This document shows positions 798 to 57,991 of a DNA stretch of 64,000 bases, piece after piece. How positions within the stretch are numbered: position 1 is the first letter of the stretch; each line of letters begins with the position of its first letter. A program made the translations under genes and the position numbers. Where the stretch lies: positions 62,001 to 126,000 of the IMG/VR virus record IMGVR_UViG_3300027621_000003; one strand, written 5' to 3'. The notes under the pieces were generated by a model. That model worked only from the letters and a program-made list of their open reading frames with translations, made no database searches and was not told the DNA's origin.

Positions 798-798
798 A

Positions 799-1675: not shown

Positions 1676-2686
1676 TTAAAGTAATTTTAACCAATCTTTA
1701 TAGTAATAGATATTTTCTAATTCCGACCACTTAGTATACACAATTTGACTATCTTCTAAAAGGTATACAAAATTGTTTTTATTAATAAAGGATGAAAACA
1801 TAGAAAAACCAGAATATCTTTGAGATAATAAAACATTTTTTGAAATGGACATCAAATACATATCATAATATGTTTGTTCAAAATCAAATTCAAATGATGG
1901 GGTTTTTAAATAATAATCCTTATACATATTTTCCCATTTTAATTTTTCTTTCTCATCATCAGAACAAAATAAAATTTTTGAGTTTGGTTTTTTTTCTAAA
2001 AAAGAATCAATAGCAATTTTAGTTAATTCATTTAAATCATTTAATTCTCTATAATCAATTACCTCGTTATTTAATTTAGACAATCTTACTTTATCTTCTC
2101 TTCTTAAGTGTACTGTTAAATCAGGAATAATATCTACTTTTGAAACATCTATAAGTTTTTTTGTTGGTTTAAAACTATTACAGACAGTATAAAAAGTTTC
2201 AATAAATGACTTCAAATCTATTCCCAATTTATTTGTTTTAAAAGGGGAATAATAACTCATAATTAAATTATCGTTTAATACGTATTTTTGATAAAACGTT
2301 ATTGGTGATTCAACTCCACCAATATACCCATCAAAATATGATAAATTTAATAAATCCGATTCATTTTTTTCAATAAATGTGTTTTCAGGTAATTCAAAAT
2401 ATTTTAAAAAATTTTCATGTTTATAGTCAGAATATCTAACATCTTTAAAAAATTTACAGATGTGACCACTATTATCTAATTTTAAATTGTCTAAACTTGT
2501 GTTATCATCTTCTTTTGTGTGATAGTAAGATTTACCATCCCCATGATTACTATATAGTGGTTTCCATTTTGAACTAAAATCTGAGTTGTTTAATTTAGCA
2601 TATGTTGCTATTAAAGAAAAATCAATAAGTCTATCACACAAACCAGATAGTGGAGAGTTAGTCCATATTAAAGTATTATTATTCAT
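1676..2686 (-). CDS. Fucosyltransferase-fold (GT11/GT23-like) glycosyltransferase
   Basis: SGLCDRL, VHLRREDK (HxRxxD GDP-sugar motif), FCSDD, SGFS. Confidence 0.55.
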   Translation of the reverse strand: MNNNTLIWTNSPLSGLCDRLIDFSLIATYAKLNNSDFSSKWKPLYSNHGDGKSYYHTKEDDNTSLDNLKLDNSGHICKFFKDVRYSDYKHENFLKYFELPENTFIEKNESDLLNLSYFDGYIGGVESPITFYQKYVLNDNLIMSYYSPFKTNKLGIDLKSFIETFYTVCNSFKPTKKLIDVSKVDIIPDLTVHLRREDKVRLSKLNNEVIDYRELNDLNELTKIAIDSFLEKKPNSKILFCSDDEKEKLKWENMYKDYYLKTPSFEFDFEQTYYDMYLMSISKNVLLSQRYSGFSMFSSFINKNNFVYLLEDSQIVYTKWSELENIYYYKDWLKLL

Positions 2687-2689
2687 AAA

Positions 2690-3511
2690 TTATTTAAGTA
2701 TTTGCCAATTTTCGGGTATAGGATTTTCATAAATTGTGTAACCTTCTCTTTGGTTAGCATAATAATGAAAATACTTTGGGATTTGTTTTATTTTTTCGTT
2801 AGTTAAAGATAAAAAATAAATCAAAACTGAATAACTTGAATCAATAAAATGAATTTCTTTTGCGTTTTCTAAAATTTTAATTTGGTCAACCATAGTTTTT
2901 GAACCATCGTTTAATTGGTGGACATAAATGTCATTAGGTAATTTAGACTTATCAATATTTATCCCTCTTTGACTATCATCATGTAATACAATGTAATCTT
3001 TTTCAGGTAACAATTCATATTTTTTATTTTCACTATCGTCATCTCTGTAAACAGAAAATTCAGTTTCTCTAACTTTTAAATCAAGATTTTCAAACAAATA
3101 AAAAGAATGTGAAAAAGAAATGTTGTTATTTATATTTTTTCCTAAAAATGATTTCCATAACTCATAATCTTCTTTAAAACAACCAACTTTAATATTGTCA
3201 TAATCACTCCACTCTGAATAATCAACAAATTTGTGTGTATCATACTTTGTATCATATCTACAAGAATAATGGTCTGATTGCATACAAATCAAACAAGAAC
3301 TATTGTATATGTTTTGGTTAATTAATTTAGGTATAACACATTTTATATTTGGTTTGTGTTTATACATTTCTTCAATAACAATCCTTCTTGATTCGTCTAA
3401 TGCAAATATAATTAATTCATCGTACAAATTAGCATAGTAATTACATAATGAATTATTTGTAAATAAATCACCAAATCCTTGGTGATGCATTATTGTTGCT
3501 TTCTTATTCAT
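2690..3511 (-). CDS. Putative GT-B glycosyltransferase, paralog of 4593..5339
   Basis: HHQGFGD N-terminus, ILENAKEIHFIDSS, C-terminal NWQILK shared with paralog. Confidence 0.45.
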   Translation of the reverse strand: MNKKATIMHHQGFGDLFTNNSLCNYYANLYDELIIFALDESRRIVIEEMYKHKPNIKCVIPKLINQNIYNSSCLICMQSDHYSCRYDTKYDTHKFVDYSEWSDYDNIKVGCFKEDYELWKSFLGKNINNNISFSHSFYLFENLDLKVRETEFSVYRDDDSENKKYELLPEKDYIVLHDDSQRGINIDKSKLPNDIYVHQLNDGSKTMVDQIKILENAKEIHFIDSSYSVLIYFLSLTNEKIKQIPKYFHYYANQREGYTIYENPIPENWQILK

Positions 3512-3512
3512 A

Positions 3513-4586
3513 TTAATTGGTGTTATTTTTTACTTGATAGTCAACCCAGTTATATGTTTCTTTAAGACCATCAATTAATAATTTGAAAGGTTCCCATCCT
3601 ATTTTTTTACGAAAAAGTTTATTATCCGATTTTCTACCTTTCACACCTAATGGACATTTAAATCCATACTTATTTAAAAATTCATCACCGTAAAGATTGT
3701 CTATTTTTACATTTTTCTGAGATATATCAATTGTCATTTGGGCTAATTGATTTATTGTTACCATCTCTTCACTTCCTATATTTACGGGTTCCATAAAATC
3801 ACTATTCATCAAACGTTCTACGGCCTCTAAACACTCATCTATAAATAAAAACGAGCGTGTTTGTTGACCATCACCCCACACTTCAATAGAACCATTATCT
3901 TCACATTCAGAAACCTTTCTACACATAGCCGCAGGGGATTTTTCTTTACCACCTTTCCAAGTACCCATAGGACCAAAAACATTATGAAATCTACCAATTC
4001 GTACATTTAGATTATAATTTCTATGATAAGCTAAAAACAATCTTTCTGAAAATAATTTTTCCCACCCATATTCTGAATCAGGATTTGCTGGATAGGCTGA
4101 AGACTCTTCACAGTTTGGATTGTTTGGGTCTAATTGATTATGTTCAGGATACATACACGCAGAAGATGAATAGAATATTTTCTTTATATCGTATTTAACC
4201 GACTCATTTAATACATTTAAATTTATTAAAGATGAATTATGCATAACGTTTGCATCATTTTCACCAGTAAAAATGTATGCCGCACCACCCATATCTGCCG
4301 CCAATTGATAAACTTCATCAAATGAATCACCAATTACCTCATCAATATGATTTTCAAAATCAACAAATTTTGTTATAATTTTTTGGTCAGGAGAAAGTAA
4401 AACGTTTTTAACAACATTAATATCTTTTAAGTCTCCCTGTACAAATTCATGACAAATTTCATTTTCTTGAAAGTATTCGTGTTTTTTTACATCACATATT
4501 CTGACCCAACACCCCTCATCTTTTAATTTTTTTGCGAGGTGTCCACCGATAAATCCACCACCACCTAATACTAAAATTTTTTTCAT
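3513..4586 (-). CDS. gme: GDP-mannose 3',5'-epimerase (extended SDR)
   Basis: GGGGFIG, LAADMGG, SSACMYP, YGWEK, GGKEKSPAAMCRKV, WGDGQQTRSF: GME-specific motifs including catalytic Cys and Lys. Confidence 0.88.
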   Translation of the reverse strand: MKKILVLGGGGFIGGHLAKKLKDEGCWVRICDVKKHEYFQENEICHEFVQGDLKDINVVKNVLLSPDQKIITKFVDFENHIDEVIGDSFDEVYQLAADMGGAAYIFTGENDANVMHNSSLINLNVLNESVKYDIKKIFYSSSACMYPEHNQLDPNNPNCEESSAYPANPDSEYGWEKLFSERLFLAYHRNYNLNVRIGRFHNVFGPMGTWKGGKEKSPAAMCRKVSECEDNGSIEVWGDGQQTRSFLFIDECLEAVERLMNSDFMEPVNIGSEEMVTINQLAQMTIDISQKNVKIDNLYGDEFLNKYGFKCPLGVKGRKSDNKLFRKKIGWEPFKLLIDGLKETYNWVDYQVKNNTN

Positions 4587-4592
4587 ATTAAT

Positions 4593-5339
4593 TTAAATAA
4601 TTTGCCAATTTGTTAAAGTTTTTGGTTTAAGAAACATTTCTTTATAACCACGTAAACAATATGTTGATATTGTAATATGATTAAATAATTCATATTTACT
4701 ATCTACTTGATATAAAAACGCTCCCCATACAGAATCCAACACATGAATATCTTTTGCGTTTTGAAGTATTTTAATATAGTCAAAAAAAGTGTTTGTTGAC
4801 TTATTTAAATCAACTAATTTACTTGTAGGATGTTTATCTCTAATACTTGAAATAATACTATCATTTAATCCATGGTATAACACATAATCATTACCATGTT
4901 CCGCAACAAATTTTGAATATGTAGATTCTTCTAAGTTTAAATCTCTATCAAACTCAAACATTGACACTCTTTCAGAGTAATCAATCCCATATGATTTATA
5001 AAATTTCTCAACAAAAAAAAGATTATGGTCTCTATTACTAAATGCTCCTTGATAAGAATCATTTCTATAACCATCAAACATACCAAAAATTAATAATGAA
5101 TTATTGTGACGGTAGTCGTTTAAAAGAGATGATAAATTATTATCAATTTGAGATTTATCAACATAACATGCGGTCACATTTGGTAAAGATTTTAAGTAAA
5201 AATCAATTATCTCCTTAAAATCGTTTCTCATTAATAAATTAATTTTATTAAATTTCTTTGAAAGAATATTAACCAATGGGAGACAGTTAATTACATCTGT
5301 AAAACCTTGGTGAAATAAAATTGTTCCTGTATTATTCAT
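4593..5339 (-). CDS. Putative GT-B glycosyltransferase, paralog of 2690..3511
   Basis: FHQGFTD, ILQNAKDIHVLDSVW, NWQII. Confidence 0.45.
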   Translation of the reverse strand: MNNTGTILFHQGFTDVINCLPLVNILSKKFNKINLLMRNDFKEIIDFYLKSLPNVTACYVDKSQIDNNLSSLLNDYRHNNSLLIFGMFDGYRNDSYQGAFSNRDHNLFFVEKFYKSYGIDYSERVSMFEFDRDLNLEESTYSKFVAEHGNDYVLYHGLNDSIISSIRDKHPTSKLVDLNKSTNTFFDYIKILQNAKDIHVLDSVWGAFLYQVDSKYELFNHITISTYCLRGYKEMFLKPKTLTNWQII

Positions 5340-5340
5340 T

Positions 5341-5898
5341 TTATAAAAATTTTAACCAGCTAGTGTCATTATATGTTTTGTCGGGTTTACCAAAAGTTTC
5401 ATTAACCGCATTTACAACACCCATAAAACATGCTTCTAAATAATCGTGACCTGCAATAATACCGCCTTGTTTTATTTTGGGTAGCCACATATTAATATCT
5501 TCTTTACAAGAATTATACGAATGGTCACCATCAATATATACAAAATCTAATGAACCATCGGCAATTTCTTTAACAAATTCCTTAGAAGTTGTTTTATGTT
5601 TTTTAATAACACTAAAATTTTTTGTTCTAATATCAAAATTAGATTCAACAACGCTCATTGGGTATTTATCTGAGCAAGCATCACCTGGTGCGTATCCATT
5701 GGACCATGGGTCAATTGCATGTAACTCCTGTAGTCCATTTATATTATCCGCAAAAATGATTGTTGATTCACCTTGGTAGGAACCAACTTCAACCATGTTT
5801 GTAATTTTATTGTCTAAATCGTTTATTAAATCAATCAACCCTTGTTTGTAGGTTGAGTTTCTACATGTTGCTTCATGCAACTCAATTAATTCAGTCAT
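5341..5898 (-). CDS. Class I SAM-dependent methyltransferase (Methyltransf_24-like)
   Basis: VEVGSYQGES, AIDPW, DFVYIDGDHSY, GGIIAGHDY. Confidence 0.85.
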   Translation of the reverse strand: MTELIELHEATCRNSTYKQGLIDLINDLDNKITNMVEVGSYQGESTIIFADNINGLQELHAIDPWSNGYAPGDACSDKYPMSVVESNFDIRTKNFSVIKKHKTTSKEFVKEIADGSLDFVYIDGDHSYNSCKEDINMWLPKIKQGGIIAGHDYLEACFMGVVNAVNETFGKPDKTYNDTSWLKFL

Positions 5899-6571
5899 TT
5901 TCGTGTATTATATCATATAGTTTATAGTACTCATCACCAAAAATATAATGAAAAGTAATTTGTTTTTTTATTTCTTCGTTAGTATAGTTCCAATATTTGG
6001 GTTCTCTTGGATTGAATAATGAACTATTGATTTGTTCAATATTATTGTCCGAACAAAAAATACCAACATTCGCATCTGCATATGGTGTTTGTTTGGCATT
6101 ATAATCCCCATTTTCTTCACGGAAATAACCGTATTTACCCGAAGGGTATGCGTTTTTTAGAATCTCTAAGGCTTTAAAATTAAATAATGTTCCAGCACCA
6201 CCTGAATGATAGTTTATACCAAAACCAGCACTATTCTCATTCAAACGACCTATTTTTACAATTTCATCTGTGGGAAGTGTTTTGACCAGTTCAATTAAAT
6301 TTTTATAGTTAACAAAACTATCGTCATCAACATTAATAAACCAATCAAAATCTTTACAGTTTTCAAATAGATAAACAAAAGATTTTAAATTTTTTTCAGG
6401 GGCACTTTCATAAGTTTTATTATCCGTAACTTTTACGGTATGATTTTCTTTATCATCATAATCTGAAATTATTAAATAATTTTCAAAATCTTTTAACCAA
6501 GTATCTTGAATAATTTTAATTCTAGAATCTAAGTGTTTTTCAGATGAAATAATTGTAACTAATATTTTCAT
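5891..6571 (-). CDS. GT31 Fringe/core-1 beta-1,3-galactosyltransferase-like glycosyltransferase
   Basis: IQDTW, DWFINVDDDSFV, SGGAG, DANVG, ITFHY. Confidence 0.75.
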   Translation of the reverse strand: MKILVTIISSEKHLDSRIKIIQDTWLKDFENYLIISDYDDKENHTVKVTDNKTYESAPEKNLKSFVYLFENCKDFDWFINVDDDSFVNYKNLIELVKTLPTDEIVKIGRLNENSAGFGINYHSGGAGTLFNFKALEILKNAYPSGKYGYFREENGDYNAKQTPYADANVGIFCSDNNIEQINSSLFNPREPKYWNYTNEEIKKQITFHYIFGDEYYKLYDIIHEND

Positions 6572-7278
6572 AATAAAGTATAATGATAATCTCTTTTATC
6601 TGTATCTAAATAAATTTCACCAACAAATTTACTATCATCTCTTTCTAAAGAAAATGGTTTACTCCATGGTTCCATGGCGTGAAATGAAGAATTCACATAA
6701 GAACTATCAATATAATTTGGGTAAATAATGTCTCTAAGAAAATGCATATCCCACCATTTTTCATACCAATCAACATCTACCCTATAATTTTTAGATGTAT
6801 TGTATTCTATGCAGGAACTTTCCATATTAAAATTTGGTTGTCTTCTCATACCCCACATCCCACCTAAAATATGGTATCCGTGGTGTGGATGGTCTCTCAT
6901 TATGTGTAGTATTTTTTCACTTTCAACCCACTCATCAACAGACACTTTTTCTCTTTCAGTAATTCTAGAATCAATATCACGAACAATAAATAACTCAACA
7001 TCTTCATCATCATTTGGTAAAAATCTCCATTGCATGGCACTTATTAAAGGATTTGTAATTAACTTGAATTCAAGTTTATCATAATCAATATTTTTTTGAA
7101 TTTCAGAAATATCAAATAACTCGTTATGATATAAGTAAATGTGCCAATTTGGATAGTACTTTTGAATTAAATTAATGTTTTGATACAATCCACTAATGTA
7201 TTTGTTGTGATTTGTTTCCATAACTCTTTCCCAATCTAAGGGTGCTTTATACAAACAAAAAGATATTACTCGTTTCAT
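6568..7278 (-). CDS. Conserved RDxDxR/RDHP/GGMWG protein, probable GT-A glycosyltransferase
   Basis: ISFCLY, WRF, VRDIDSR, HIMRDHPHH, ILGGMWG; paralog at 28590..29249. Confidence 0.5.
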   Translation of the reverse strand: MKRVISFCLYKAPLDWERVMETNHNKYISGLYQNINLIQKYYPNWHIYLYHNELFDISEIQKNIDYDKLEFKLITNPLISAMQWRFLPNDDEDVELFIVRDIDSRITEREKVSVDEWVESEKILHIMRDHPHHGYHILGGMWGMRRQPNFNMESSCIEYNTSKNYRVDVDWYEKWWDMHFLRDIIYPNYIDSSYVNSSFHAMEPWSKPFSLERDDSKFVGEIYLDTDKRDYHYTLL

Positions 7279-8000
7279 GTTAAAAATGTGTGTCTATCAT
7301 TTAAAAATTTATTTTTGTATTCATTGTGTAAATTAACCCAAGTTGAATAATCAGAATTATAATGAATGGCCTTTTTTTCAGGACATAAACTACATACCTT
7401 TATGTGGGTTAATGCCTTATGCTTATAACCAAATAAATGTGCTCTTATGGACATATCTGAATCGGCATAATAATATTTAAAGTCGGGGTGATACATACCA
7501 ATTTCTCTAAAAATGTTTTTTCTATAAATTCCATAATTCATGGTTATTTCACCAATAGTGTCATATTCATCAACAATACACCACCCTTTATTCTTTTGAT
7601 TTTCATGGTAACGACCTGTTATCCAATCATCGTCTGACACGTCAGTTCTATGACCATATTTCCAATTGAATAAATAAAAATCGTATCCGTCTTCAATTTC
7701 TGAAATTACGTCATCCCATGAATTAACTAATAAAACATCATCATTCCATTGACAGACTAATTCATGAGTAGCCTGTTCAATACCTAACTTCATAAAGTCA
7801 GGATAACTACTTCTTCCACCAACTTCAATTAACTTTATCCTTGGGTGGTTTAATTGTTTTATATATGTGGATGTTGGATTATTTAATTCTCCTCCATCAA
7901 CTAATACCAATTCTAATTTTTCGTGTGAATCAACGGTATTTTTAATTAAATCTGGTAAAAATTCCAATCGTTCAAGTGTTCCAGTAACAATACTTATCAT
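7275..8000 (-). CDS. GT2 glycosyltransferase
   Basis: ISIVTGT, VLVDGG, WNDD, YYADSDMSIR. Confidence 0.75.
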   Translation of the reverse strand: MISIVTGTLERLEFLPDLIKNTVDSHEKLELVLVDGGELNNPTSTYIKQLNHPRIKLIEVGGRSSYPDFMKLGIEQATHELVCQWNDDVLLVNSWDDVISEIEDGYDFYLFNWKYGHRTDVSDDDWITGRYHENQKNKGWCIVDEYDTIGEITMNYGIYRKNIFREIGMYHPDFKYYYADSDMSIRAHLFGYKHKALTHIKVCSLCPEKKAIHYNSDYSTWVNLHNEYKNKFLNDRHTFLT

Positions 8001-8004
8001 AATA

Positions 8005-8478
8005 TTAAGTATAAATAGATTTAGATATGTTTATATAGTCAGTACAAATTGCGTATACATTTTTTGTTGTGGTAGATATAAGGTCAGTATCACTTAATAA
8101 CGGAATTATACATTTATCATTTAAGTTAAGTTCTAAATCATGAACCCAAATATGGTTAGTGCTTGTTAACACAAAATTATCTGATGTATGACAAAAAAAC
8201 ATGTATGGTGTTTCATAATTTTTCTGTAATTCACACAATCTTGATGCTGCATTTAAATTTTTACAATGAAACCATATTTTATGTTTTCTTTTTTCTATCC
8301 AAGTTTCCGATATTTCATAATCAGGAGTATCGTGACCTAAAAAAAACTTATTGTTTAAATAGTTAATATCCACCTCAACATCATAACCCGCAGAAATTGC
8401 GGTATCAATATATGATGGTGAATTTTCTCTACTTGGATTAGGGCCAATCATATTACCTCTATGTGAAATTAATTTCAT
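8005..8478 (-). CDS. Glycerophosphodiester phosphodiesterase-like (PLC-like) small protein
   Basis: ISHRGN, GYDVEVD, LGHD, WFHCKN, ICTDY. Confidence 0.65.
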   Translation of the reverse strand: MKLISHRGNMIGPNPSRENSPSYIDTAISAGYDVEVDINYLNNKFFLGHDTPDYEISETWIEKRKHKIWFHCKNLNAASRLCELQKNYETPYMFFCHTSDNFVLTSTNHIWVHDLELNLNDKCIIPLLSDTDLISTTTKNVYAICTDYINISKSIYT

Positions 8479-8783
8479 ATTTCTTCAATTCTAAGTGTTT
8501 TATCATCAATGAATAAATCGTAATAAGGTTTTGTAACATTTAATTCGTGGTGTTTAGCACCCCACTCATTAAGTTGTTTTTTTGTTAAATCATACCAATT
8601 TATTTGTGTACGACTACCACGAGCTGTCCAATATACAATTGTATTCCCATCATCATATAATCTATTAATTTTATCAATATTTTCTTTGATGGGTTTGGCG
8701 TTGTAGTAGTTTCTAGGTTCTGGTGTTTCACAGATTGTTTCATCTATATCAACATAAATGACTCTTGTTTTATTTATTTCCAT
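8475..8783 (-). CDS. Small HAD-superfamily phosphatase (capsule biosynthesis phosphatase-like)
   Basis: VDIDETIC, YWTARG, KPYYDLFIDDK. Confidence 0.75.
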   Translation of the reverse strand: MEINKTRVIYVDIDETICETPEPRNYYNAKPIKENIDKINRLYDDGNTIVYWTARGSRTQINWYDLTKKQLNEWGAKHHELNVTKPYYDLFIDDKTLRIEEI

Positions 8784-9444
8784 TTTGTTTAATAAGGTTT
8801 TGTCTATAAATTTCTTTTTTATCAGTAATTAGGTTATTAACTTCAGTTTCATTCAAAAAATGTGTCTTACCTAAAACGTGACTACCAATAAAAATTTCGG
8901 CAGATTTTTCACAAATATCTGTAGACATTATACATTCTTGAATTGTTTCTCCACAACAAATAATACCATGATTTTGTAGTAATATTAATTTAGGAAAATA
9001 TTTTTCTTCTTTAATAAAAAGATTAATACAATCTTTAATAACATTTGTTAATTCTTCACCAGGTTTAGCATATGGTACAAAACAAGATTTAGTACCATTA
9101 AAAATAACTTGGTCAGGAAATAATCTGTTTTGTGCAAATGTTTTACTTAACTCACTACATAAAATTTTTACAGTATTTGATGGGTGTGTGTGAGAAACAT
9201 AATTAATGTCATCAAAACTTAATAGGTAGGTGTGAAAACTTAATTCCATACTACCTCTTTTTTTAAAATTATTTAATTGATTACCTTTAAAATCAAAAAA
9301 GACTAAATCTTTTTTTGTGAGAGATTCTAATCTTGTCCCACTTGCTTTAATAATTAAGCCATTTTTATACTTAGAGGAAACATTTCCTTCAAAACCGACA
9401 CAATGTTTTGATACAGATTTAGATAGTTCTAATATTTTTTTCAT
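8770..9444 (-). CDS. Class II aldolase/adducin family protein
   Basis: EGNVS, IKASG, SMELSFH, HTHP, LQNHG metal-binding motifs. Confidence 0.85.
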   Translation of the reverse strand: MKKILELSKSVSKHCVGFEGNVSSKYKNGLIIKASGTRLESLTKKDLVFFDFKGNQLNNFKKRGSMELSFHTYLLSFDDINYVSHTHPSNTVKILCSELSKTFAQNRLFPDQVIFNGTKSCFVPYAKPGEELTNVIKDCINLFIKEEKYFPKLILLQNHGIICCGETIQECIMSTDICEKSAEIFIGSHVLGKTHFLNETEVNNLITDKKEIYRQNLIKQNGNK

Positions 9445-9458
9445 TATTATATCTTATT

Positions 9459-10907
9459 TTAACCATTATAGTTAAGATTCAATATAAAATATAATATATA
9501 GTCATAAAAAGTGTAATTCTTATTTATATCAAAAAAGATTAATCTTTTATAATTTAAGAATGTTACCTTGTTAAATCTATTTTCGTCTTGTAAATCAAAT
9601 TCAATTTTATTGTCGGATAATTTTTTTAATATATGTTTAATATTAAATGATTTGTCAATTAATAGTTCTAAACTTAATTTAGGATTAACGTTCAAATTTT
9701 GTAAGTCAATATCATCAATTGTGAAAAATTTTATTATAACATCGGCATTGTCTTTTTGGGGTAATATAAATTGTTCAAAATCAGATTCTCTATTTTTTAT
9801 ATTAGATAAAACTTGGTCAGGAGTATATCCTCTCTCTTTAACATCACGTGATATTTTCCACTTCTTTTTTAATAAATCATCAGTATCCATATAAATTTTT
9901 AAATCATAAAGATTGTTTTCAGATTGATTAAATAAACTATGAAGTCCACAGACAATTAAATTGTTTGATGGTGAAATTGGTTTTTTTTCTGTAAATTTTC
10001 CGGTTGAATGGTCATAATCAACTTGGTAAATTTCATTTCCAACTTTTAAATTGAAAATATCCTCACTCATTTTTGTAATATGATTTGCATTTGGATTTAA
10101 ATGAGTGTAAGTTTTCCAATTGTTATTTGTTCTTTCCCATTTGTGATATCTATCACATTCTAACAAAAAGGAATCCGTAAAAGAAATTTTTAATAAATTA
10201 CTTAATGTGGATTTTCCCGAACCAGAGTCACCACAAATGGCAAAAACATTACATTTTGATAAAATAAAACTATAATCTAAATCAAACAACGTATAGTTAA
10301 TTTTATTTGAATTCAAATATTCATAAAGTAATGTTTCAGGACAAGTACCGTATAAACTAATTAAATTCTGAATGTTGTTATAAATGTTAAAATAATTGTT
10401 CATTATTTTGGAACTTCCAAAAGCAAACGCATCACAAATGTAATTGTCCGTTGGGGTTTCTAACTTTAATTTGTCTATTTTACTATCTTCAGGAATAAAC
10501 AAAGAATCCTTTTCAAAATTAAAAAAATTGGTAGACTTAATTAATAAATCAGGTCTAAGTCGTATTACTAAATCATATTCTTTTCCCGACAAATCCTCAT
10601 TTATTTTTCTTATTTCATTTAACTTATAAAGTTTTGACCAATGATTTATTACATTGTTAATTTTTTTATTCTCATCGTAAAAGATATTATCTTCAACAAG
10701 GGTTGTAATAGGATTTAAAAGATTTTTGATATGATTTAAATCAGATTCACTAATTTGATTAAAATATTTATCCTCTAAATTTTCATTATTAGTTATGTGA
10801 AGATAAACATCAACGTTTACAAAGTTATTAATAATTTCTTCTTTAATAAAATTAATATTTTCTTGGTAATTTCTAAGATAACCTGAAATTAATAACGCAA
10901 CCTTCAT
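9459..10907 (-). CDS. Fusion: N-terminal glycan-locus domain (RxRPD) plus phosphoribulokinase/uridine-kinase-like domain
   Basis: N-terminal KVALLISGYLR..RLRPDL..DAFAFG; C-terminal GDSGSGKST, DRYH, LNPNAN, YDHSTG, GLH, RDVKERG, FILPQK..ADV as in PRK. Confidence 0.75.
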   Translation of the reverse strand: MKVALLISGYLRNYQENINFIKEEIINNFVNVDVYLHITNNENLEDKYFNQISESDLNHIKNLLNPITTLVEDNIFYDENKKINNVINHWSKLYKLNEIRKINEDLSGKEYDLVIRLRPDLLIKSTNFFNFEKDSLFIPEDSKIDKLKLETPTDNYICDAFAFGSSKIMNNYFNIYNNIQNLISLYGTCPETLLYEYLNSNKINYTLFDLDYSFILSKCNVFAICGDSGSGKSTLSNLLKISFTDSFLLECDRYHKWERTNNNWKTYTHLNPNANHITKMSEDIFNLKVGNEIYQVDYDHSTGKFTEKKPISPSNNLIVCGLHSLFNQSENNLYDLKIYMDTDDLLKKKWKISRDVKERGYTPDQVLSNIKNRESDFEQFILPQKDNADVIIKFFTIDDIDLQNLNVNPKLSLELLIDKSFNIKHILKKLSDNKIEFDLQDENRFNKVTFLNYKRLIFFDINKNYTFYDYILYFILNLNYNG

Positions 10908-10917
10908 CGTTTTACTA

Positions 10918-12135
10918 TTAAAAATTAGTTTTAAAACTATCTAAATTTATTTCCCATGGTGAATTTAATCCACCATCTAATTTAATACAATCTTTTGGAT
11001 TAACTTGTTTACTCAAATATTTGGTATCATTATTCCAAGCGGTTAACATAGTATCACTATATGAAATAGTTAGACAATCATTTTCCACTTGGGTTATCTC
11101 CCCGACAATATTATCAACCTTCACTCTCATGTATGTTTTAAACTCACCATTTTCTGTGTGTGATGTGTTATCAAATAAGTTTAAATTAACTTTATTTAAT
11201 GAATATAAAAAACGTTTATTTATATCTAAAAAAAATGGAGATATGATGGCTGTTAAATTACAACTTTTTTTGGAAAATAAAACATTACAAATACCACCAC
11301 CTATTGCACCAACAACTTCTTCAACATTGGCAAATAAAAGTATTTTTTCCGTAGTTGTCATGTTTTCTGTGAATACCTCTGTAAAACCATTTTCAATTAA
11401 AAAATTAACCAAAGAATCTTCGTTGACTAATTTACGTTTAGTTGTGTAGTTTGTACCTATATTACTAAAATCACCATGTAACCAACTTCTTCGTGAAATA
11501 TAAACTTTCTTAGGTAAATTTTCTTGATTAGTATCTTTACTCACTCTCTTAACAATTTTACGATATAAATCATAAATTTCATTTCTTGGGGGTAAATTAG
11601 AATCAAAATCGTGTGTATATGATGTTGATACTAAAATTGATGAGTACTCAGTATTTTCATCTATTATTTTAATATCATTATCTGTAATTCCCAGTATATC
11701 TAAAAACTCAGAAACAAATCTATAATGTTCTTTTTTATTGGGATTTGGATAATTCATTAATAGTTTTAAATTTGGTTTTGTTTTCTTCATTTCCATAAAA
11801 CTTATCAAATATGGTAATGTGTCATAAACAAAATGAAAATAATTATCGGTATTATAAATAAAGTAGAATAAACTTTCTGACTCAAAATTTTTAGTTGTTT
11901 TTTCCTCATCAAATTTAATATCTTTTGAAATTCCTTTCAAAGACATTGTGGTTTCTTGAATAGGATTAACTATTTGATTTGTTTCATTTGAAATAAAAAA
12001 AATGTTTGGATAAAATAAGGATTCTCCAGTTGGGATTACATTTTTTAATTCATAGACATTTATTTCTCGTTGATTTGAGTCAACAGGAAATAAATTAATT
12101 TTATCAATTATTTCTTTATACGATACAAGATTCAT
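10918..12135 (-). CDS. GT61 (DUF563) glycosyltransferase
   Basis: NYFHFVYDTLP, KVYISRR, RKLVNE, VVGAIGGGICNVLF. Confidence 0.75.
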   Translation of the reverse strand: MNLVSYKEIIDKINLFPVDSNQREINVYELKNVIPTGESLFYPNIFFISNETNQIVNPIQETTMSLKGISKDIKFDEEKTTKNFESESLFYFIYNTDNYFHFVYDTLPYLISFMEMKKTKPNLKLLMNYPNPNKKEHYRFVSEFLDILGITDNDIKIIDENTEYSSILVSTSYTHDFDSNLPPRNEIYDLYRKIVKRVSKDTNQENLPKKVYISRRSWLHGDFSNIGTNYTTKRKLVNEDSLVNFLIENGFTEVFTENMTTTEKILLFANVEEVVGAIGGGICNVLFSKKSCNLTAIISPFFLDINKRFLYSLNKVNLNLFDNTSHTENGEFKTYMRVKVDNIVGEITQVENDCLTISYSDTMLTAWNNDTKYLSKQVNPKDCIKLDGGLNSPWEINLDSFKTNF

Positions 12136-13011
12136 TTAATTTAACTCTTCAAGTATTTTATAAAAACTTTTATTTAACCTTGTATGTTCTGCCATATCTG
12201 TACCTCCAACTCTTTCATCTTCATGCCACCAAATATCAAATTCTAATGTTACAAATAAATCAGGGTGGTTTCTATACATTAATGTCATTATGTCTTCTTC
12301 GTGATATAGTCTTTTATCATGTTCAGTAACTTGATAAACATATTTTTTGAAGAGTGTGATTATCTCGTTTAATAATTCTTTTTTTCCACCAAAAAAACCA
12401 CCGATGATGTGTCTAGAATTATCATATTCATTAAAATGTAATTCATTGACAGTACCTGACCAAAAATTTCTTGAGTTTTCTTTTGAAACAATGATAATTT
12501 TATCACCACTTTTAGAAATTAAATTGTTCAAAAATGTATTATTAAATAAAGAACTTTCATAATATTGACTATTATGAATACCTGTTTTTGCCAAATATCT
12601 GTTTGGTATTAAACCACAATGTGACAAACCAGCATCTATCCAATAATAATTGTCATAGGACATATCCTCCATTGATAACCATATGAACTTCATATACTGA
12701 ATCTCAATACATCTATCCCCTCTTTTAGTTCCTTCATAGTCTTTGTATTGACCAATCAAATCAGAAAATTCATTTTGTTTTAAATCAAATTTAACAAATT
12801 TAATTTTTTCAGGATTTATATTGTTTTCAACATAGAAAAAATCAACTAATTTATCGTACTCATCATCAGATGTGTAACATATAAAATCTGCGTCTGTCAT
12901 TTTTAATAATGATAGTAAGCTCCAAAAATAATGACCCTGTCTACCATTTCTCCCACCTAATTCAGTTCCATATAAATTAGAATAAATTGCTGTAATAATT
13001 TTAGTTTTCAT
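12136..13011 (-). CDS. HtrL/YibB-like glycosyltransferase
   Basis: ITAIY, MKF, YYWIDAGL, IIGGFFGG, EEDIM. Confidence 0.6.
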   Translation of the reverse strand: MKTKIITAIYSNLYGTELGGRNGRQGHYFWSLLSLLKMTDADFICYTSDDEYDKLVDFFYVENNINPEKIKFVKFDLKQNEFSDLIGQYKDYEGTKRGDRCIEIQYMKFIWLSMEDMSYDNYYWIDAGLSHCGLIPNRYLAKTGIHNSQYYESSLFNNTFLNNLISKSGDKIIIVSKENSRNFWSGTVNELHFNEYDNSRHIIGGFFGGKKELLNEIITLFKKYVYQVTEHDKRLYHEEDIMTLMYRNHPDLFVTLEFDIWWHEDERVGGTDMAEHTRLNKSFYKILEELN

Positions 13012-13735
13012 ATATAAATTCTTTATGTTCGTTGTTTTGTTTAGTTATTTGATTACGTTCGTAATCTAAAAATTCGCCAGAAATTTTATATGGAGAATAC
13101 CCATTCCAATTATAAGTTTGTATATAAAAATTACTATAAGACCCTTGTGTGACATCTGAAAAATCACTTTTTTGTGGTGCTATTGGTAATATTGGACAGT
13201 AACTTTGTTTTTTTGTTGTTATGTTATTATAAATGTACTCATCAATTGCATAATAACCTTGTAAATTATCGGTCACAATTTGTTTAACATCATTAAATAT
13301 TGATTTATGATATACCATCATATTTGTTGCAAATACACCCCTATGTCTTTCTTCTTTAGGTGGAAAATTAGTAATATCAATTAACAATTTATGGTTTTTA
13401 CTAACATCAACAGGTCTATTATGTGTTGGGGATAAATTTAAAATACCAAATTCAGTATTTTCTAACTCAATGTCCAATTTTTCAATAAATGATTTTGCGT
13501 ATGGCATAAATGAACAATCATCTTCTATAACCATAACATATTCATAATCTCTTTCAATTGCAATATCTATGATTGCAATATGAGATAACGTGCATCCTAA
13601 ATGACTACCTGTATCAACAGCTTTGAATAATTCATAATCCCACCCAATGTATGACATTTCTTTTTGGATGTGTTCTAATCTGTCAATACGTTTTTCTAAA
13701 TTTAGAACAAATTTTGGTATTTCATTTAATTTCAT
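13001..13735 (-). CDS. GT25 glycosyltransferase (likely start MKLNEIPK at 13735)
   Basis: VLNLEKRIDR, GCTLSH, VIEDD, AIDEY. Confidence 0.8.
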   Translation of the reverse strand: MKLNEIPKFVLNLEKRIDRLEHIQKEMSYIGWDYELFKAVDTGSHLGCTLSHIAIIDIAIERDYEYVMVIEDDCSFMPYAKSFIEKLDIELENTEFGILNLSPTHNRPVDVSKNHKLLIDITNFPPKEERHRGVFATNMMVYHKSIFNDVKQIVTDNLQGYYAIDEYIYNNITTKKQSYCPILPIAPQKSDFSDVTQGSYSNFYIQTYNWNGYSPYKISGEFLDYERNQITKQNNEHKEFIYEN

Positions 13736-13739
13736 ATCT

Positions 13740-14339
13740 TTATATTTTTTCCCAATTTTCCCACACAAACTCATAATCATAAGTTAATTTGTGTGTTAAA
13801 GTTAATTTTTCTCTTATCCAATTTCTTAAATTTACAGAATCTGGTATAAACTGATGAAATTGTACCTGTATGTTTTTAAACATATGTATAACATCATTAT
13901 CAATTAAACTCTTTAATACTGGAAATTCATCACCCTCAATATTAATCTTTATTAAATCAATGTTGTCTATGTTATTTTCATTTAAAAATTTAACAAATGA
14001 AACAACTTTGGCCAATATTTTATTTTCAGCGTTAATATAAAAAGAACTTCCATCGTTTAACAATGCAATCTCAATTGATTTATCTTCGTCTGAAATTCCA
14101 AAATTATAAACTTTTATTTTTTCTTTATCTTTAAATTTTTCTACCAAATTATTATATAACTCAGGTATAGGTTCAAAAACATGTACATAACATTGATATT
14201 TATCGTAAATTTTTTGAGTCCAACTTCCGTGATATCCACCTAAGTCAAACACAATTGAATTTTCGTTTAGGGGGTAATTAACTCTTAATGTGTCGTCACC
14301 ACCAATTTTAAACCATTCTTGTAAATCTTCGTAATTCAT
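13740..14339 (-). CDS. FkbM-family methyltransferase (likely start MNYEDL at 14339)
   Basis: VFDLGGYHG, VFEP, IKINIEGDE, QVQFH. Confidence 0.85.
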   Translation of the reverse strand: MNYEDLQEWFKIGGDDTLRVNYPLNENSIVFDLGGYHGSWTQKIYDKYQCYVHVFEPIPELYNNLVEKFKDKEKIKVYNFGISDEDKSIEIALLNDGSSFYINAENKILAKVVSFVKFLNENNIDNIDLIKINIEGDEFPVLKSLIDNDVIHMFKNIQVQFHQFIPDSVNLRNWIREKLTLTHKLTYDYEFVWENWEKI

Positions 14340-14358
14340 TTTTTTATTTTTTTTATGT

Positions 14359-15138
14359 TTATATGATAACCCAATTTTCTGGATAAAGGTCATCTGTAAT
14401 GTATGAATGTAATGTCGGACCAAACCATTTTTTTGGTGATATTACAATATTTTCTTTTTTATTTAACCATGCACCCCACCAACTAAAACTACTATTTGCA
14501 ATAATATTATTATTACAGAATGACATCAAATACAATTCTTCATAGTCGGATAAATCGGTAATAAAAACTTTGTTTTTAATATATTCAAACTGTGTTTTAC
14601 AATATTCAATATCATCTGAAAATATTAAATAAACTGATTCAGAACCAATTATTTCATATGATTTTTGATAGTAATCATGTGATAAAACTGGATGGTAATT
14701 TTCTAAATGAAGATAATCACCTCGTCTTACATGTATAGAACAAGTTTTATTTTTTAATATTTCTCCGTATATAGATTGTAATTTATTTTTAATTTCATCA
14801 TTTGGTTCAAACAAAGATAAAATTCCTTCTCGGTTTTTTTTAAAATATTTATCACTTTGAAAAAAACCTGATAATTTTATACTTCTATCAAACTTAGGTA
14901 TTTCACAGTAATGAAAACTACCCACATTATAAACTTCATACGGTACTTCTGTATTTGAAAATTTTACTTTTTGAAATATTGTGTTTTTATATGAGCTTAA
15001 TGGGTTGTGTCCATTATAATGTTTAGTTTCATCAACAATAAAATCTGAGTCTTCGTCTATTGAGGTAGAATACCCTGTAGCGATTTGAAACATTGTATTA
15101 CCAAGACCTCCGTGTATATTTGTTGAAATAACATTCAC
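14359..15138 (-). CDS. GT11 alpha-1,2-fucosyltransferase-like
   Basis: GGLGNTMFQ, GFFQS, IHVRRGDY, FSDD, IIANSSFSWWGAWL. Confidence 0.9.
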   Translation of the reverse strand: MNVISTNIHGGLGNTMFQIATGYSTSIDEDSDFIVDETKHYNGHNPLSSYKNTIFQKVKFSNTEVPYEVYNVGSFHYCEIPKFDRSIKLSGFFQSDKYFKKNREGILSLFEPNDEIKNKLQSIYGEILKNKTCSIHVRRGDYLHLENYHPVLSHDYYQKSYEIIGSESVYLIFSDDIEYCKTQFEYIKNKVFITDLSDYEELYLMSFCNNNIIANSSFSWWGAWLNKKENIVISPKKWFGPTLHSYITDDLYPENWVII

Positions 15139-15143
15139 TTGTT

Positions 15144-15908
15144 TTAATCTTTAAACATTAAATTTGATTTATCATCATATCCTCGTCTATGTGCAAAAAT
15201 TACAGAACCAATAGATTTTGCACCTTCCAAGTTTCTACTTGAATCCGTCCAATATCCGTATATGTCAATTTCTTGTTTTGAACAACCATATCTTGAAGCC
15301 AATATAGACAAAATACTTTGGTCATGACGATGATTTTCTTGATTTCCATCTAAACAACCTTCAATTAACGAAAACGCATACGCATCATCAAATAATTGTT
15401 GATATTTTCCATTAGATTTATATCCAACCAATCCAGCCCAAAGTTGGTTATCACTAAGTTCGCTTTCTGTAGCAGAAACACATTCAACACATTCTGAGTG
15501 TGTAAAATTTCTATTTATGTGAACATCACCAACTAAAAATATTTCTTCGTTTTCAATCTTATCATAGATTTCTTTAATTGATTTCAAAGGACATGCTCCT
15601 GAGTCCAACCATAAAACATTATGTCCCAAACTACTTGCATTTTTCATACAGTAAATTTTATAGATGTAAGATTTTGGTTCCAAAAATTTTGAATGTAATT
15701 CTGTTGCGTTTGATGGGAAATTTAAAACTTCAACATTTTTTAATGTGTTTAAATAATTAATTTCATTTTCTTCCAATCCCAAGTTAAAAACAAAAATTCT
15801 ATCAACAACTTCCAAACTATCTTTATGTACATTACTTATCAATGTTAAAAGAGAACTATAGTAGGGACTATTGGTCGCGGTAACTAAAATATTATTATAC
15901 ATTTTCAT
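15144..15908 (-). CDS. DUF1647-like putative GT-A glycosyltransferase
   Basis: FNLGL, VLWLDSG, NHRHDQSILSIL. Confidence 0.55.
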   Translation of the reverse strand: MKMYNNILVTATNSPYYSSLLTLISNVHKDSLEVVDRIFVFNLGLEENEINYLNTLKNVEVLNFPSNATELHSKFLEPKSYIYKIYCMKNASSLGHNVLWLDSGACPLKSIKEIYDKIENEEIFLVGDVHINRNFTHSECVECVSATESELSDNQLWAGLVGYKSNGKYQQLFDDAYAFSLIEGCLDGNQENHRHDQSILSILASRYGCSKQEIDIYGYWTDSSRNLEGAKSIGSVIFAHRRGYDDKSNLMFKD

Positions 15909-16710
15909 TTAAATAAGTTTCAATTATTTTTTCAGGGTAAATATATTTTTTAGCAGATTCAAAATTACTTTGGATTGAATTTATTTTAGAGTTATACAAT
16001 TCCACATCTAAAGTATCAATAATTGTTGATAATTCATTTTCATCGTTGATGAAAATAACACCATTAGTATCAAAATAATTTTCAATGTTTTTTGTACCCC
16101 AATAAATTGGAATGGTACCTGTCAAGAAACAATCTAATAGTTTTTCAGTAAAATAATCCGACTCAATTGAATTTTCAATTACAACTGAAAATCTATAGTC
16201 TTTTAGACCATCAACTTTTAAATCAATAGGTTTATCACAACCACTACCATAAAAATCAATTTTACCACTATCTTTAAACATATTATAGATTGAGTGTCTT
16301 AATCTATGACCATGATTCCAAGTTTTCCATGAAAAAATTGTGCTAATAGATTTTAATTTTTCGTGAATACCCATATCCTCTTCTCTCATCCATGTTCCAC
16401 CAGCTGGTATGTAAACAAAATTATCAATTCTGTCGTTTAAATCTTTTATGAAACTAAAAATATATTTAAAATTTTTGTAGTCTCTAACAGCCTTTCCTTG
16501 ATGGTCACCATTAATAATGGGTGGTTCTAATAACCAAACACAATTAATTTTTTCGGGATTTATTTCTTGTGAAAATGCCATACTGTCGGTGTATATTGCA
16601 ATATCATACTCGGTTGTTGTCCTTGACCATTCTACAGGACTTGGTAAATTTAAAGATATCCCTGACACACCGTCAAAGTTACCGTCAATTAATTTTATTG
16701 TTTTTGTCAT
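15895..16710 (-). CDS. GT10 alpha-1,3/4-fucosyltransferase-like
   Basis: YRFSVVIENSIESDYFTEKLLDCFLTGTIPIYWG matches the GT10 alpha-1,3 motif. Confidence 0.85.
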   Translation of the reverse strand: MTKTIKLIDGNFDGVSGISLNLPSPVEWSRTTTEYDIAIYTDSMAFSQEINPEKINCVWLLEPPIINGDHQGKAVRDYKNFKYIFSFIKDLNDRIDNFVYIPAGGTWMREEDMGIHEKLKSISTIFSWKTWNHGHRLRHSIYNMFKDSGKIDFYGSGCDKPIDLKVDGLKDYRFSVVIENSIESDYFTEKLLDCFLTGTIPIYWGTKNIENYFDTNGVIFINDENELSTIIDTLDVELYNSKINSIQSNFESAKKYIYPEKIIETYLNENV

Positions 16711-16721: not shown

Positions 16722-17969
16722 TTATAAATTACCTGTTATTCTTTCACACCAATCTTTAGATATTGAGTGTGGCCAAACAACCCAATACTTAGGTTTATGT
16801 TCTGTTTGGAATTCTCTCCATACCTTACAGTAACCATCTGGGTCATTCATCATTCTATTGATTTCATCTTTGTCAGCATCTTTTCTGTTCAATGTCTCAT
16901 CATTTTCACCGTGGAAAGCAACAACCCAAAAATCATAATCTTTTTCAGGGACTTGTGAGAATCCAATATCAATACAATGTTTAAATACTTGAGCAAAGTT
17001 TTTCTTCCACTCTTCCTCAGATTCAAAATTATATGGGTTTGGTGGGTAATTCTTATCTAACGTATGTTGTTGAACCGCTCTTTTTTCAAATAAAAGACCT
17101 GAATATTTTTCATAATCTCTTAATGTCCTAACGGGTCCAAAACCATAAGGTCCATCATGTCCTTCTTGTTGTTCACCATCCATACCAAACAATTTTCTAT
17201 TGGTAAAATGTGAATGACTATTTTTATTTCCCCACTCTTTATCATCATCCCACTGTTTTGTTCTACCTTTACGAGTATATTCGTGCCAAATTAAAACTTT
17301 ATGTGGGTGGAATAAATCATAACCCCAAGTGTAAGCACGAGCAGCAATTGATATTTCTTCACCGTGGAAATAGTATTCAGGATTGTGTTGTACTTCTTTT
17401 GAGAATTGTCCTAATGTAAAACAGTAGTGAGCTGAATAGAAACGAGATGTAACAGGTTCTGTTAAGCTCTGCCAACCTGGAATTGTCTCAGGTAGGAAGA
17501 ATACCGCACCTTCGGGAATAAATCTGTCAAACGCCATTCTCCATGGTTCTTGCATTCTCCCTGCTGGGTCATTGTCGGGGTCAAATGATGAAACATATCC
17601 TGTAAGTAATGGTTTTTCATGACCTTTCTTTTGGAGTTGTTTAATCATCTTAATCATTTCATCGTCCCAATTGGGTGCGAATCTCATGTGTGAGTCAATT
17701 TGAAGTGTATATTCTTCATCTTGATACACTTGTTGGACTTGGTGTCTTGCCCAACAAACACCCTTTGATTCCAAATATGGAATGTTAAGGATTCTAAATC
17801 TTTTATCTTTTTCGTACTCTGACAAATCATCAAATTTATCATCAGGATGAAATTGTCTTGCAATACCAATTCTTAAGTTTTTAGGTCTTTTAGCATTTTC
17901 TATCATACTTTTGATAGTAGCGATAAGTTGGGGGTCACGATAAGCGGCAATTTGAACAAATATTTTCAT
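16722..17969 (-). CDS. GT60 polypeptide/hydroxyproline alpha-GlcNAc transferase (Gnt1-like)
   Basis: IFVQIAAYRDP, SKGVCWAR, YTLQIDSHMRF..WD, FHGEEISIAARAYTWGYDLF, HEY, GPVRTLRDYE. Confidence 0.85.
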   Translation of the reverse strand: MKIFVQIAAYRDPQLIATIKSMIENAKRPKNLRIGIARQFHPDDKFDDLSEYEKDKRFRILNIPYLESKGVCWARHQVQQVYQDEEYTLQIDSHMRFAPNWDDEMIKMIKQLQKKGHEKPLLTGYVSSFDPDNDPAGRMQEPWRMAFDRFIPEGAVFFLPETIPGWQSLTEPVTSRFYSAHYCFTLGQFSKEVQHNPEYYFHGEEISIAARAYTWGYDLFHPHKVLIWHEYTRKGRTKQWDDDKEWGNKNSHSHFTNRKLFGMDGEQQEGHDGPYGFGPVRTLRDYEKYSGLLFEKRAVQQHTLDKNYPPNPYNFESEEEWKKNFAQVFKHCIDIGFSQVPEKDYDFWVVAFHGENDETLNRKDADKDEINRMMNDPDGYCKVWREFQTEHKPKYWVVWPHSISKDWCERITGNL

Positions 17970-42418: not shown

Positions 42419-42658
42419 ATGGAAAATACTGAAAATACTGAAGAAATGTCAAAAAAAACACAAGAAATTATTGGTTCTCTTTTTGATACAATACATTACA
42501 CCTCAAATGAACAATTAAATTCACTTATTGATGGTATGAATGAAGAACAAGCGATATATTGTATAAGACAAGCATTAATCGCTTGCCACGTTAGAGGCGC
42601 ATTTACAATGGAAGAAACCGAAGCAGTTTCAAAGTCTTTAAGAGTTATAAATTCTTAA
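42419..42658 (+). CDS. Hypothetical protein
   Basis: 79-aa ORF. Confidence 0.55.
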   Translation: MENTENTEEMSKKTQEIIGSLFDTIHYTSNEQLNSLIDGMNEEQAIYCIRQALIACHVRGAFTMEETEAVSKSLRVINS

Positions 42659-57949: not shown

Positions 57950-57991
57950 AATTTTACTATATAAATATAGCAATAATGGTAAATTGTTAAA

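Follow-up and report, generated by a model that had tools for sequence, protein, structure and literature searches.

Which sugar does a bacteriophage transfer when it encodes enzymes of the fucosyltransferase families together with an epimerase of the kind that makes GDP-L-galactose, and no gene for making GDP-fucose? The question is raised by a 64,000-nucleotide stretch of IMG/VR record IMGVR_UViG_3300027621_000003 (the window, hereafter), in which a GDP-mannose 3,5-epimerase (GME) gene lies in a large glycan island with members of the glycosyltransferase families GT10 and GT11. The original prediction, made from the letters of this stretch alone, was that the phage may install L-galactose, possibly O-methylated, in place of L-fucose. 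Since the linkage of GME with GT11, GT10 and FkbM-type methyltransferases is real and widespread and comes without GDP-fucose genes, phage-directed L-galactose glycans are in our view the most economical reading; the sugar chemistry is predicted, and we put the probability of this reading at roughly 45%.

The open reading frame (ORF) of the epimerase is intact, and its product matches the Pfam Epimerase family over its full length (PF01370, E 4e-38). In a phmmer search of the PDB it matched Arabidopsis GME (2c59) with an E-value of 1.1e-87 over residues 3-353, the next-best family, UDP-glucuronate decarboxylase, giving 1.9e-20 and GDP-fucose synthase 1e-15, and it scores far under each of the cut-offs of the NCBIfam equivalogs Fcl, RmlB and GalE. 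The glycine-rich NAD motif, GGGGFIGG of the GxxGxxG type, occupies residues 8-15, and the motifs YSSSACMYPE, YGWEK and GGKEK are all present. The residues known to separate GME from GalE and GDP-fucose synthase are S143/Y174/K178, C145/K217, R306, R243 and N203 (PMC8787198), and all eight are kept in the phage protein, by a manual count of positions in the alignment with 2c59 (Arabidopsis numbering; a constant offset of two fits every position). The serine, tyrosine and lysine of the catalytic triad align in YSSSAC and YGWEK; the acid-base pair Cys145/Lys217 is found in SSAC and GGKEK, aligned with SSAC and GGREK of 2c59, and it is this lysine, instead of a histidine, that sets GME apart from GDP-fucose synthase (PMC8787198). 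Arg306, which acidifies the cysteine, Arg243, which contacts the diphosphate, and Asn203 lie in GVKGRKSDN, GQQTRSF and RFHNVFGP, respectively. The intact GME with SSAC, YxxxK and EK motifs that had been recognised at the outset is thus borne out, and by these marks the gene encodes a genuine GME, with activity on GDP-D-mannose as its predicted function.

The extended short-chain dehydrogenase/reductase (SDR) fold, the NAD motif, the S/Y/K triad, the Cys/Lys pair and R306/R243/N203 are shared with Arabidopsis GME and with GM35E of Methylacidiphilum. The phage enzyme differs from these plant and bacterial enzymes in being virus-encoded, in lying among glycosyltransferases instead of serving ascorbate synthesis, and in its two insertions, at about residues 62-88 and 300-311 in the comparison with plant GME and outside the catalytic motifs; its product is predicted from sequence.

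That GDP-fucose synthesis genes are missing from the window had also been claimed, and the absence holds well beyond it. The window corresponds to bases 47636-111635, read on the reverse strand, of a linear 117,610-bp IMG/VR contig (31% G+C), for which CheckV gives a completeness of 39%. In the two 20-kb stretches compared, the window shares 100% identity with two further IMG/VR contigs, G001 (140.6 kb) and G002 (232.9 kb), which together reach from -58474 to 234006 in window coordinates, about 292.5 kb, or ~98% of a genome that three completeness estimates place near 299 kb. At the outer ends of these contigs, the first 6 kb of G001 have no identical overlap in G002, giving only 64-87% matches, to Thr-Pro repeat DNA; G001 begins inside repeats. 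The assemblies probably break at these Thr-Pro repeats, leaving a gap of ~6-7 kb.

Across the ~292 kb of phage sequence there is no match to the models for gmd (TIGR01472) or fcl (NF047922), and none to the fucose pyrophosphorylase (PF07959) or GHMP kinase (PF00288) of an Fkp-type salvage route. The 117.6-kb contig contains one SDR, GME itself, by PF01370 and PF16363 (the latter applied to this contig only), and G001 and G002 contain one each by PF01370. About 98% of the estimated genome is without any GDP-fucose route, so that the claim made for the window is confirmed and extended to ~292 of ~299 kb. Two nucleotidyltransferase-containing phage proteins were considered as ManC and had no convincing identity as such; GDP-mannose is therefore assumed to be supplied by the host.

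The two fucosyltransferase-family enzymes reported alongside GME are likewise present, both exceeding their Pfam cut-offs and both carrying family motifs. GT11 scores 96 bits against a PF01531 cut-off of 23.9, and has both motif I (HVRRGDY) and the C-terminal SSFSWWGAWL; in a sequence comparison with the PDB it matched no solved relative. GT10 scores 49 bits against a PF00852 cut-off of 23.9, and its donor-binding motif, of the FxxxFENSxxxxYxTEK type, reads FSVVIENSIESDYFTEKL, aligned to FYLSFENSIHKDYITEKL of FUT9. Among solved enzymes it is closest to FUT9, Arabidopsis FucTA and H. pylori FucT, the N-terminal 130 residues aligning poorly to solved enzymes. The FkbM and Methyltransf_24 proteins, invoked earlier as possible O-methylating enzymes, match PF05050 and PF13578.

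The premise that fucosyltransferases accept GDP-L-galactose is documented for GT10, GT37 and GT23 enzymes (AtFUT1, AtFucTA and FUT8 in vitro, with a plant GT10 enzyme among them; PMC8787198), which makes the corresponding step in the phage biochemically plausible. Arabidopsis mur1 follows the same logic as the one proposed here, in that GDP-L-galactose made by GME is used by fucosyltransferases when GDP-fucose is not made. In plants, however, L-galactose in place of L-fucose is a mutant or in-vitro phenomenon, whereas in the phage it would be a native, selected arrangement.

Genomic linkage connects these enzymes. GME is common in viral contigs, with at least 600 matching IMG/VR stretches, of which the best 80 loci are at least 64% identical to it. 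When 24 island proteins were compared with the ORFs of 77 non-identical GME loci, up to 10 kb on each side, GT11 was near GME in 40 loci, GT10 in 32, and FkbM in 12 when matched directly or 45 when its cluster was counted, while each of the remaining island proteins was found in only 0-9 loci. Family searches over 50 whole GME-bearing viral records returned GT11 in 34 and GT10 in 27, a true gmd in three and an fcl-like gene in four; where GT11 and GT10 matches were placed relative to GME they lie within ~12 kb of it, save for one GT10 about 28 kb off (contig G034). Neither GT10 nor GT11 was found in any of 14 control bacterial genomes. The usual site of the module in relatives is a variable slot between dUTPase and PhoH, with a typical gene order of GT2_5/GT4, GT2, FkbM, GT11, GT10, a 271-aa SDR and GME. 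In the window phage this slot (27160-30980) is filled by other genes, and GME, GT10, GT11 and FkbM all stand in the minus-strand island, which suggests that the four relocated together. Joint relocation, combined with the turnover of every other glycosyltransferase, argues for a functional unit.

The same association is found in an unrelated lineage. There are 37 GenBank phage records with a GME 52-56% identical to that of the window, all from marine T4-like cyanophages or from single-cell virus fragments related to them; most of these genes are labelled 'UDP-glucose 4-epimerase', 'nucleotide-sugar epimerase' or 'NAD-dependent epimerase', and only the record of S-SCSM1 (MK867354) names GDP-mannose 3,5-epimerase. 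GenBank phage records with GT11 number 103. GT11 is present in ten of the ten complete Kyanoviridae (cyanophage) genomes with GME that were examined. In S-8S56, S-CAM9, Bellamy and SynMITS9220M01 it comes straight after GME or overlaps it, and in RB11-B the order is GME, FkbM, GT17, GT11; GME is the sole SDR in the complete genomes of S-CAM9 and S-T4. ACG-2014f phages have no GME, and their GT11 sits after gmd, an SDR and an aminotransferase. In S-SCSM1, gmd, fcl and GME are consecutive genes. As GME precedes GT11 in several cyanophages and gmd precedes it in ACG-2014f, phage GT11 genes usually stand behind an enzyme that remodels GDP-mannose, as a donor-transferase pair would predict. GME is a widespread phage gene, and one that travels with GT11, GT10 and sugar methyltransferases, usually without GDP-fucose genes.

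The only paper we found that names a phage GME is the one on cyanophage S-SCSM1 (PMC9602691), where the gene stands, likewise, beside GT11-type and other fucosyltransferase-like genes in a 'cell wall' cluster. S-SCSM1 differs in being a marine phage of the T4-like family with a cyanobacterial host, and in having gmd and fcl beside GME, whereas the window phage, S-CAM9 and S-T4 have GME only. The question of the donor is not raised in that paper, nor does S-SCSM1 raise it, because gmd and fcl are at hand.

Based on this linkage, we suggest that GME, GT11, GT10 and FkbM form a portable four-part module within the island. GME would convert GDP-D-mannose of the host into GDP-L-galactose, with GDP-L-gulose as a by-product; GT11 and/or GT10 would then add alpha-L-galactose to a growing oligosaccharide, at sites that fucose occupies in H/Lewis-type structures, and FkbM-type methyltransferases would O-methylate the glycan product. 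In making its own donor, the phage would be freed from dependence on the host GDP-fucose pathway.

As for the acceptor, a candidate lies at the head of the island, in the form of a 1314-aa mucin-like protein with two TPTxT-type Thr-Pro tracts of ~160 and ~190 residues, which span approximately residues 735-900 and 965-1150. The protein is a probable virion fibre, with a match at its C-terminus to phrog_8510 ('virion structural protein'). Between its gene and GT10 lies the gene of a GT60-type protein that scores 218 bits against a PF11397 cut-off of 21; the GT60 gene is kept in all three complete relatives (L102-L104), directly downstream of two to four genes for Thr/Pro/Ser-rich proteins, and was found in none of the 14 control bacterial genomes. 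GT60 enzymes start mucin-type O-GlcNAc in Dictyostelium and Trypanosoma; the phage protein shares with these the PF11397 domain (E 3e-64) and a place beside genes for Thr-rich repetitive proteins, while its setting is a bacterial virus and its transfer of GlcNAc to Thr or Hyp of a protein is predicted from context.

Because Thr-Pro tracts, an adjoining conserved GT60 and a match to a virion structural family occur together, the acceptors are likely to be the phage's own Thr-Pro mucin-like proteins. We propose that GT60 initiates O-glycans on the Thr-Pro tracts, and it would prime the LamG-tipped 1314-aa protein as well as two smaller ones near the capsid genes. Thr-Pro proteins beside a conserved GT60 point to extensive virion O-glycosylation in this uncultured jumbo-phage lineage. 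Mycobacteriophages, according to Freeman et al. 2023 as cited in PMC12619734, and giant viruses modify their structural proteins with glycosyltransferases of their own. The present system differs from those in the proposed Thr-Pro acceptors, the GT60-type initiator, a far larger island and the predicted donor step for a rare L-sugar.

A third HxRxxD enzyme, encoded at 1676-2686, had been listed with GME, GT10 and GT11; its fucosyltransferase-type fold is supported, its partnership with GME is not. The protein has no Pfam or NCBIfam match, and H193, R195, R196, D198 and K199 of its HLRREDK motif are invariant in 17 homologues. For its AlphaFold2 model (pLDDT 82), every one of the top 20 Foldseek matches is AtFUT1 or NodZ, and POFUT1, POFUT2 and FUT8 come next (probability 0.99-1.0, TM-score 0.39-0.47), and its neighbours by protein-language comparison are GT11, NodZ and O-FucT clusters. 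As no curated family matches it in sequence, we describe it, from the model, as having a fucosyltransferase-like fold and assign it to no CAZy family. On unrelated contigs its homologues and those of the adjacent GT9-like protein are paired side by side with the genes of what we call module B, which runs in the order GT61, PRK-family kinase, class II aldolase (with HAD), GT9-like protein, fucosyltransferase-fold protein and double nucleotidyltransferase (window 3-12135, minus strand, plus L003 2801-4423; relatives L099, L100 and L101). On the contigs examined, module B had no GME, GT10 or GT11 within 8 kb of it. The third enzyme thus travels with module B and is not counted as a partner of GME; it probably uses the module B product.

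GT61 keeps the same position relative to the kinase on unrelated contigs, and relatives of the two small HAD-phosphatase-like ORFs are found in the same place as 97- and 148-aa genes. In the window phage, GME and one uncharacterised ORF appear to have been inserted into the module. The second domain of the double nucleotidyltransferase is weakly similar to the heptose-1-P guanylyltransferase HddC, and the model of the GT9-like protein (pLDDT 91) finds its best folds in WaaF, TibC and a GT9 protein at E ~1e-3, a weak match. Together with the kinase/phosphatase/nucleotidyltransferase logic and the presence of WcbI, these likenesses hint that an unusual activated sugar, NDP-heptose-like or otherwise, is the product of module B.

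On its central point, L-galactose rather than fucose, the original prediction is upheld in part. A true GME, ~98% of a genome without a GDP-fucose route, and the linkage with GT11, GT10 and FkbM in two unrelated lineages speak for it, while several other observations weigh on the opposite side. The GT11 tree groups by phage lineage, with no separation into GME-linked and gmd-linked clades: the gmd-only GT11s of ACG-2014f and the GT11 of cyanophage B23 nest among GME-linked ones, and among jumbo phages, genomes that combine gmd and an fcl-like gene with GME have GT11s close to those found where GME stands alone. With no split by pathway there is no dedicated L-galactose clade, and the tree would fit promiscuous enzymes that follow a phage-supplied donor and constant use of fucose supplied by the host equally well. 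B23 has GT11 and neither an SDR nor any donor-pathway gene, which shows that a phage GT11 can work from a host-supplied donor, and the host could supply GDP-fucose. In a few relatives (G003, G031 and S-SCSM1) GME has both gmd and an fcl-like gene as neighbours; in the window phage itself, ~10 kb separate GME from GT11 and GT10, and the genes immediately downstream of GME are part of another module. Inherited synteny accounts for much of the co-occurrence in jumbo relatives, which means that the counts are not independent events, and the ~6-7 kb of genome left unassembled must be set against the absence of GDP-fucose genes. Short Logan contigs from four lake metatranscriptomes match parts of the island identically, including parts of GME, but attest presence in RNA libraries and not strand, level or transcription, DNA carry-over being possible. 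Several of these observations would be expected if GT11 and GT10 were ordinary users of host GDP-L-fucose, with GME serving another transferase or the formation of GDP-L-gulose and co-travelling by way of an inherited island; several uncharacterised island ORFs could then be the true L-galactose or L-gulose transferase. We take this to be a serious contender but rate it as unlikely. Of all the island genes only GT11, GT10 and FkbM keep company with GME, the other glycosyltransferases all being exchanged; several cyanophage genera have GME and GT11 overlapping, with no rival gene in between; the members of the module stayed together on changing islands; and we see no clear reason to carry a donor-forming enzyme and yet use a host donor for the adjacent transferase.

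The same sugar chemistry might also have another target, namely the host envelope (lipopolysaccharide O-antigen or capsule) during infection, for instance to block superinfection or grazing. The cyanophage literature assigns such 'LPS genes' to cell-wall modification, and the WcbI, GT25 and GT9-like families are typical of lipopolysaccharide and capsule pathways; GT60 directly beside Thr-Pro mucin-like genes in the window phage and in all three complete relatives, and the match of one of these proteins to a virion structural family, nonetheless make the envelope a rather doubtful destination to us. Pfam scans of the island ORFs recognised no Wzx/Wzy/WaaL-type or membrane glycan-export gene, although no search was aimed at a flippase or polymerase. 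The insertion of GME inside module B, with a weakly HddC-like domain, WcbI and a GT9-like transferase in or near that module, would suit an epimerase acting on GDP-heptose or another GDP-sugar made there instead of on GDP-mannose. We find this very improbable given the ~50% identity to plant GME with all substrate-contact and catalytic residues kept, and the occurrence of GME without module B in nearly all relatives, as of module B without GME; to our knowledge, moreover, the known GDP-heptose 3,5-epimerases are cupins and not SDRs. That the island serves to glycosylate phage DNA in the form of hypermodified bases is scarcely credible either: the 557-aa protein beside the family-B polymerase (PolB) has a weak TAGT-like match and dUTPase is nearby, but that match falls under the Pfam cut-off, no base-hydroxymethylase was noted, and glycans on proteins or surfaces are a far better fit to ~15 glycosyltransferases, GT60 and mucin-like tracts.

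The reading we prefer thus remains that of phage-directed L-galactose glycans. Its most far-reaching form would have eukaryote-like, mucin-type O-glycans on Thr-Pro tracts of the phage's own fibre and capsid-associated proteins, initiated by GT60 and capped with (O-methyl-)alpha-L-galactose by GT11 and GT10 as native L-galactosyltransferases, with the same GME/GT11 cassette serving hundreds of aquatic jumbo phages and numerous marine cyanophages. In this complete form, which would make L-galactose a common and overlooked sugar of phage-directed glycans, we hold it to be decidedly unlikely. If L-galactose is indeed transferred, enzymes annotated as fucosyltransferases in phages and bacteria may natively transfer it, virion or infected-cell glycans would contain a sugar that is mistaken for D-galactose in routine analyses, and these phages would not depend on the fucose metabolism of the host. 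The cultured cyanophages in which GME is the only SDR (S-CAM9 and S-T4) make the question of the donor testable at the bench.

Coordinates of the genes discussed, in window numbering unless a locus is named, with the family matches found for their products.
Feature	Position	Strand	Length and remarks
GDP-mannose 3,5-epimerase (GME/GM35E)	3513..4586	minus	357 aa; intact ORF; extended SDR
GT11 alpha-1,2-fucosyltransferase family	14359..15138	minus	259 aa; PF01531 E 2.7e-27
GT10 alpha-1,3/4-fucosyltransferase family	15895..16710	minus	271 aa; PF00852 E 5.6e-13
FkbM-family methyltransferase	13740..14423	minus	227 aa; PF05050 E 5.5e-12; candidate sugar O-methyltransferase
Methyltransf_24 / O-methyltransferase-like protein	5341..5898	minus	185 aa; PF13578 E 1e-20
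GT60-type polypeptide GlcNAc-transferase-like protein	16722..17969	minus	415 aa; PF11397 E 3e-64; phrog_24687 E 7e-164
Thr-Pro mucin-like protein, C-terminal ConA/LamG domain	18027..21971	minus	1314 aa; head of island
Thr-Pro-rich-tailed protein	42655..43077	minus	140 aa; just downstream of major capsid gene; possible second acceptor
Protein with ~200-aa Thr-Pro tract	56984..57973	minus	329 aa; possible third acceptor
Fucosyltransferase-superfamily GT-B enzyme (third enzyme)	1676..2686	minus	336 aa; HLRREDK
GT9 (heptosyltransferase)-like GT-B protein	2690..3511	minus	273 aa; immediately downstream of GME; module B
GT61-family glycosyltransferase	10918..12135	minus	405 aa; first module B gene
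PRK/uridine-kinase-family P-loop kinase	9459..10907	minus	482 aa; module B
Class II aldolase/epimerase-family protein	8770..9444	minus	224 aa; module B; HAD-fused in relatives
Two small HAD-phosphatase-like ORFs	8005..8783	minus	102 and 157 aa; weak HAD_PNKP match; phrog_34507; module B
Double nucleotidyltransferase	3..836, continuing past the left edge of the window	minus	540 aa; module B
WcbI-family capsule-biosynthesis protein	799..1671	minus	290 aa; PF18588 E 3.5e-19
Fringe/GT31-like glycosyltransferase	5891..6571	minus	226 aa; PF02434 E 1e-16
GT25-family glycosyltransferase	13001..13780	minus	259 aa; PF01755 E 3e-16
Major capsid protein	43167-45023		PHROGs match
Portal	49212-51020		PHROGs match
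Large terminase (TerL)	51051-52820		PHROGs match

The glycan island consists of 23 tightly packed ORFs over ~22 kb, all on the minus strand and with gaps of at most 57 nt, in a large minus-strand block between the Thr-Pro protein gene and PolB. Past the left edge of the window (L003 4416-6089), the 557-aa protein has an HtrL_YibB domain, and its position is kept in the three complete relatives. A scan of the whole window with Rfam gave no match, including none to the wcaG RNA motif, which is annotated upstream of sugar genes in S-SCSM1, and a tRNA scan found none. In positions 1-20000, promoter-like sites numbered 152 against 144 expected and terminator-like sites 8 against 5.2 expected.

The source is an uncultured tailed freshwater jumbo phage with a genome of ~300 kb, which also encodes PhoH, dUTPase and PolB. 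Positions 1600-7600 are represented at 99% or more of their sampled words in at least 14 freshwater metagenome runs dated 2017-2021, no two of which come from one study, although any one of these runs may itself be the sample from which the window was assembled. Among isolates, the closest relatives of TerL are only ~28% identical (uncultured huge phages and Flavobacterium phage immuto), by which a Bacteroidota host is only a lead. Genes for the heat-shock chaperones DnaK/DnaJ are reported in every member of the aquatic jumbo phages named 'Moraphage' (PMC12619734); an HSP70 domain is absent from G001 and G002, and we rejected this identity for the window phage. Near the structural genes, on the plus strand at 59668-61662, lies the gene of a 664-aa homologue of FtsH/AAA-type ATP-dependent proteases (phrog_4871, E 2e-240).

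Two kinds of genes recur beside GME in other phages. A short, RmlD-like SDR of 247-273 aa is found immediately upstream of it in many jumbo relatives (for example at L014 6309-7124 and L077 9175-9990), though not in the window phage, and also in cyanophages S-SSM7, RB11-B and S-B05 (cyanophage loci L087 7213-7956 and L088 7126-7947); it may process the GME product further. Directly upstream of GME in G003 stands the gene of a 317-aa protein without a family match (L014 9027-9980), whose cluster occurs in 18 GME loci, mostly adjoining GME, and which could be an unrecognised transferase.

Further glycan genes lie elsewhere in the phage genome. A second cluster on the plus strand of the window (27160-35242) encodes GT2_5, a Fringe-like protein, PhoH, and GT1-like and GT2-like proteins, as well as a truncated-looking NDP-sugar dehydrogenase-like protein (29910-30980). 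A third island, outside the window (G002 208000-224000; L089), encodes five FkbM-family methyltransferases, because of which the phage is predicted to invest heavily in sugar O-methylation. Also encoded there are a 609-aa protein in which a nucleotidyltransferase is fused to a kinase-like domain, a DUF6625 protein and a hexapeptide acyltransferase.

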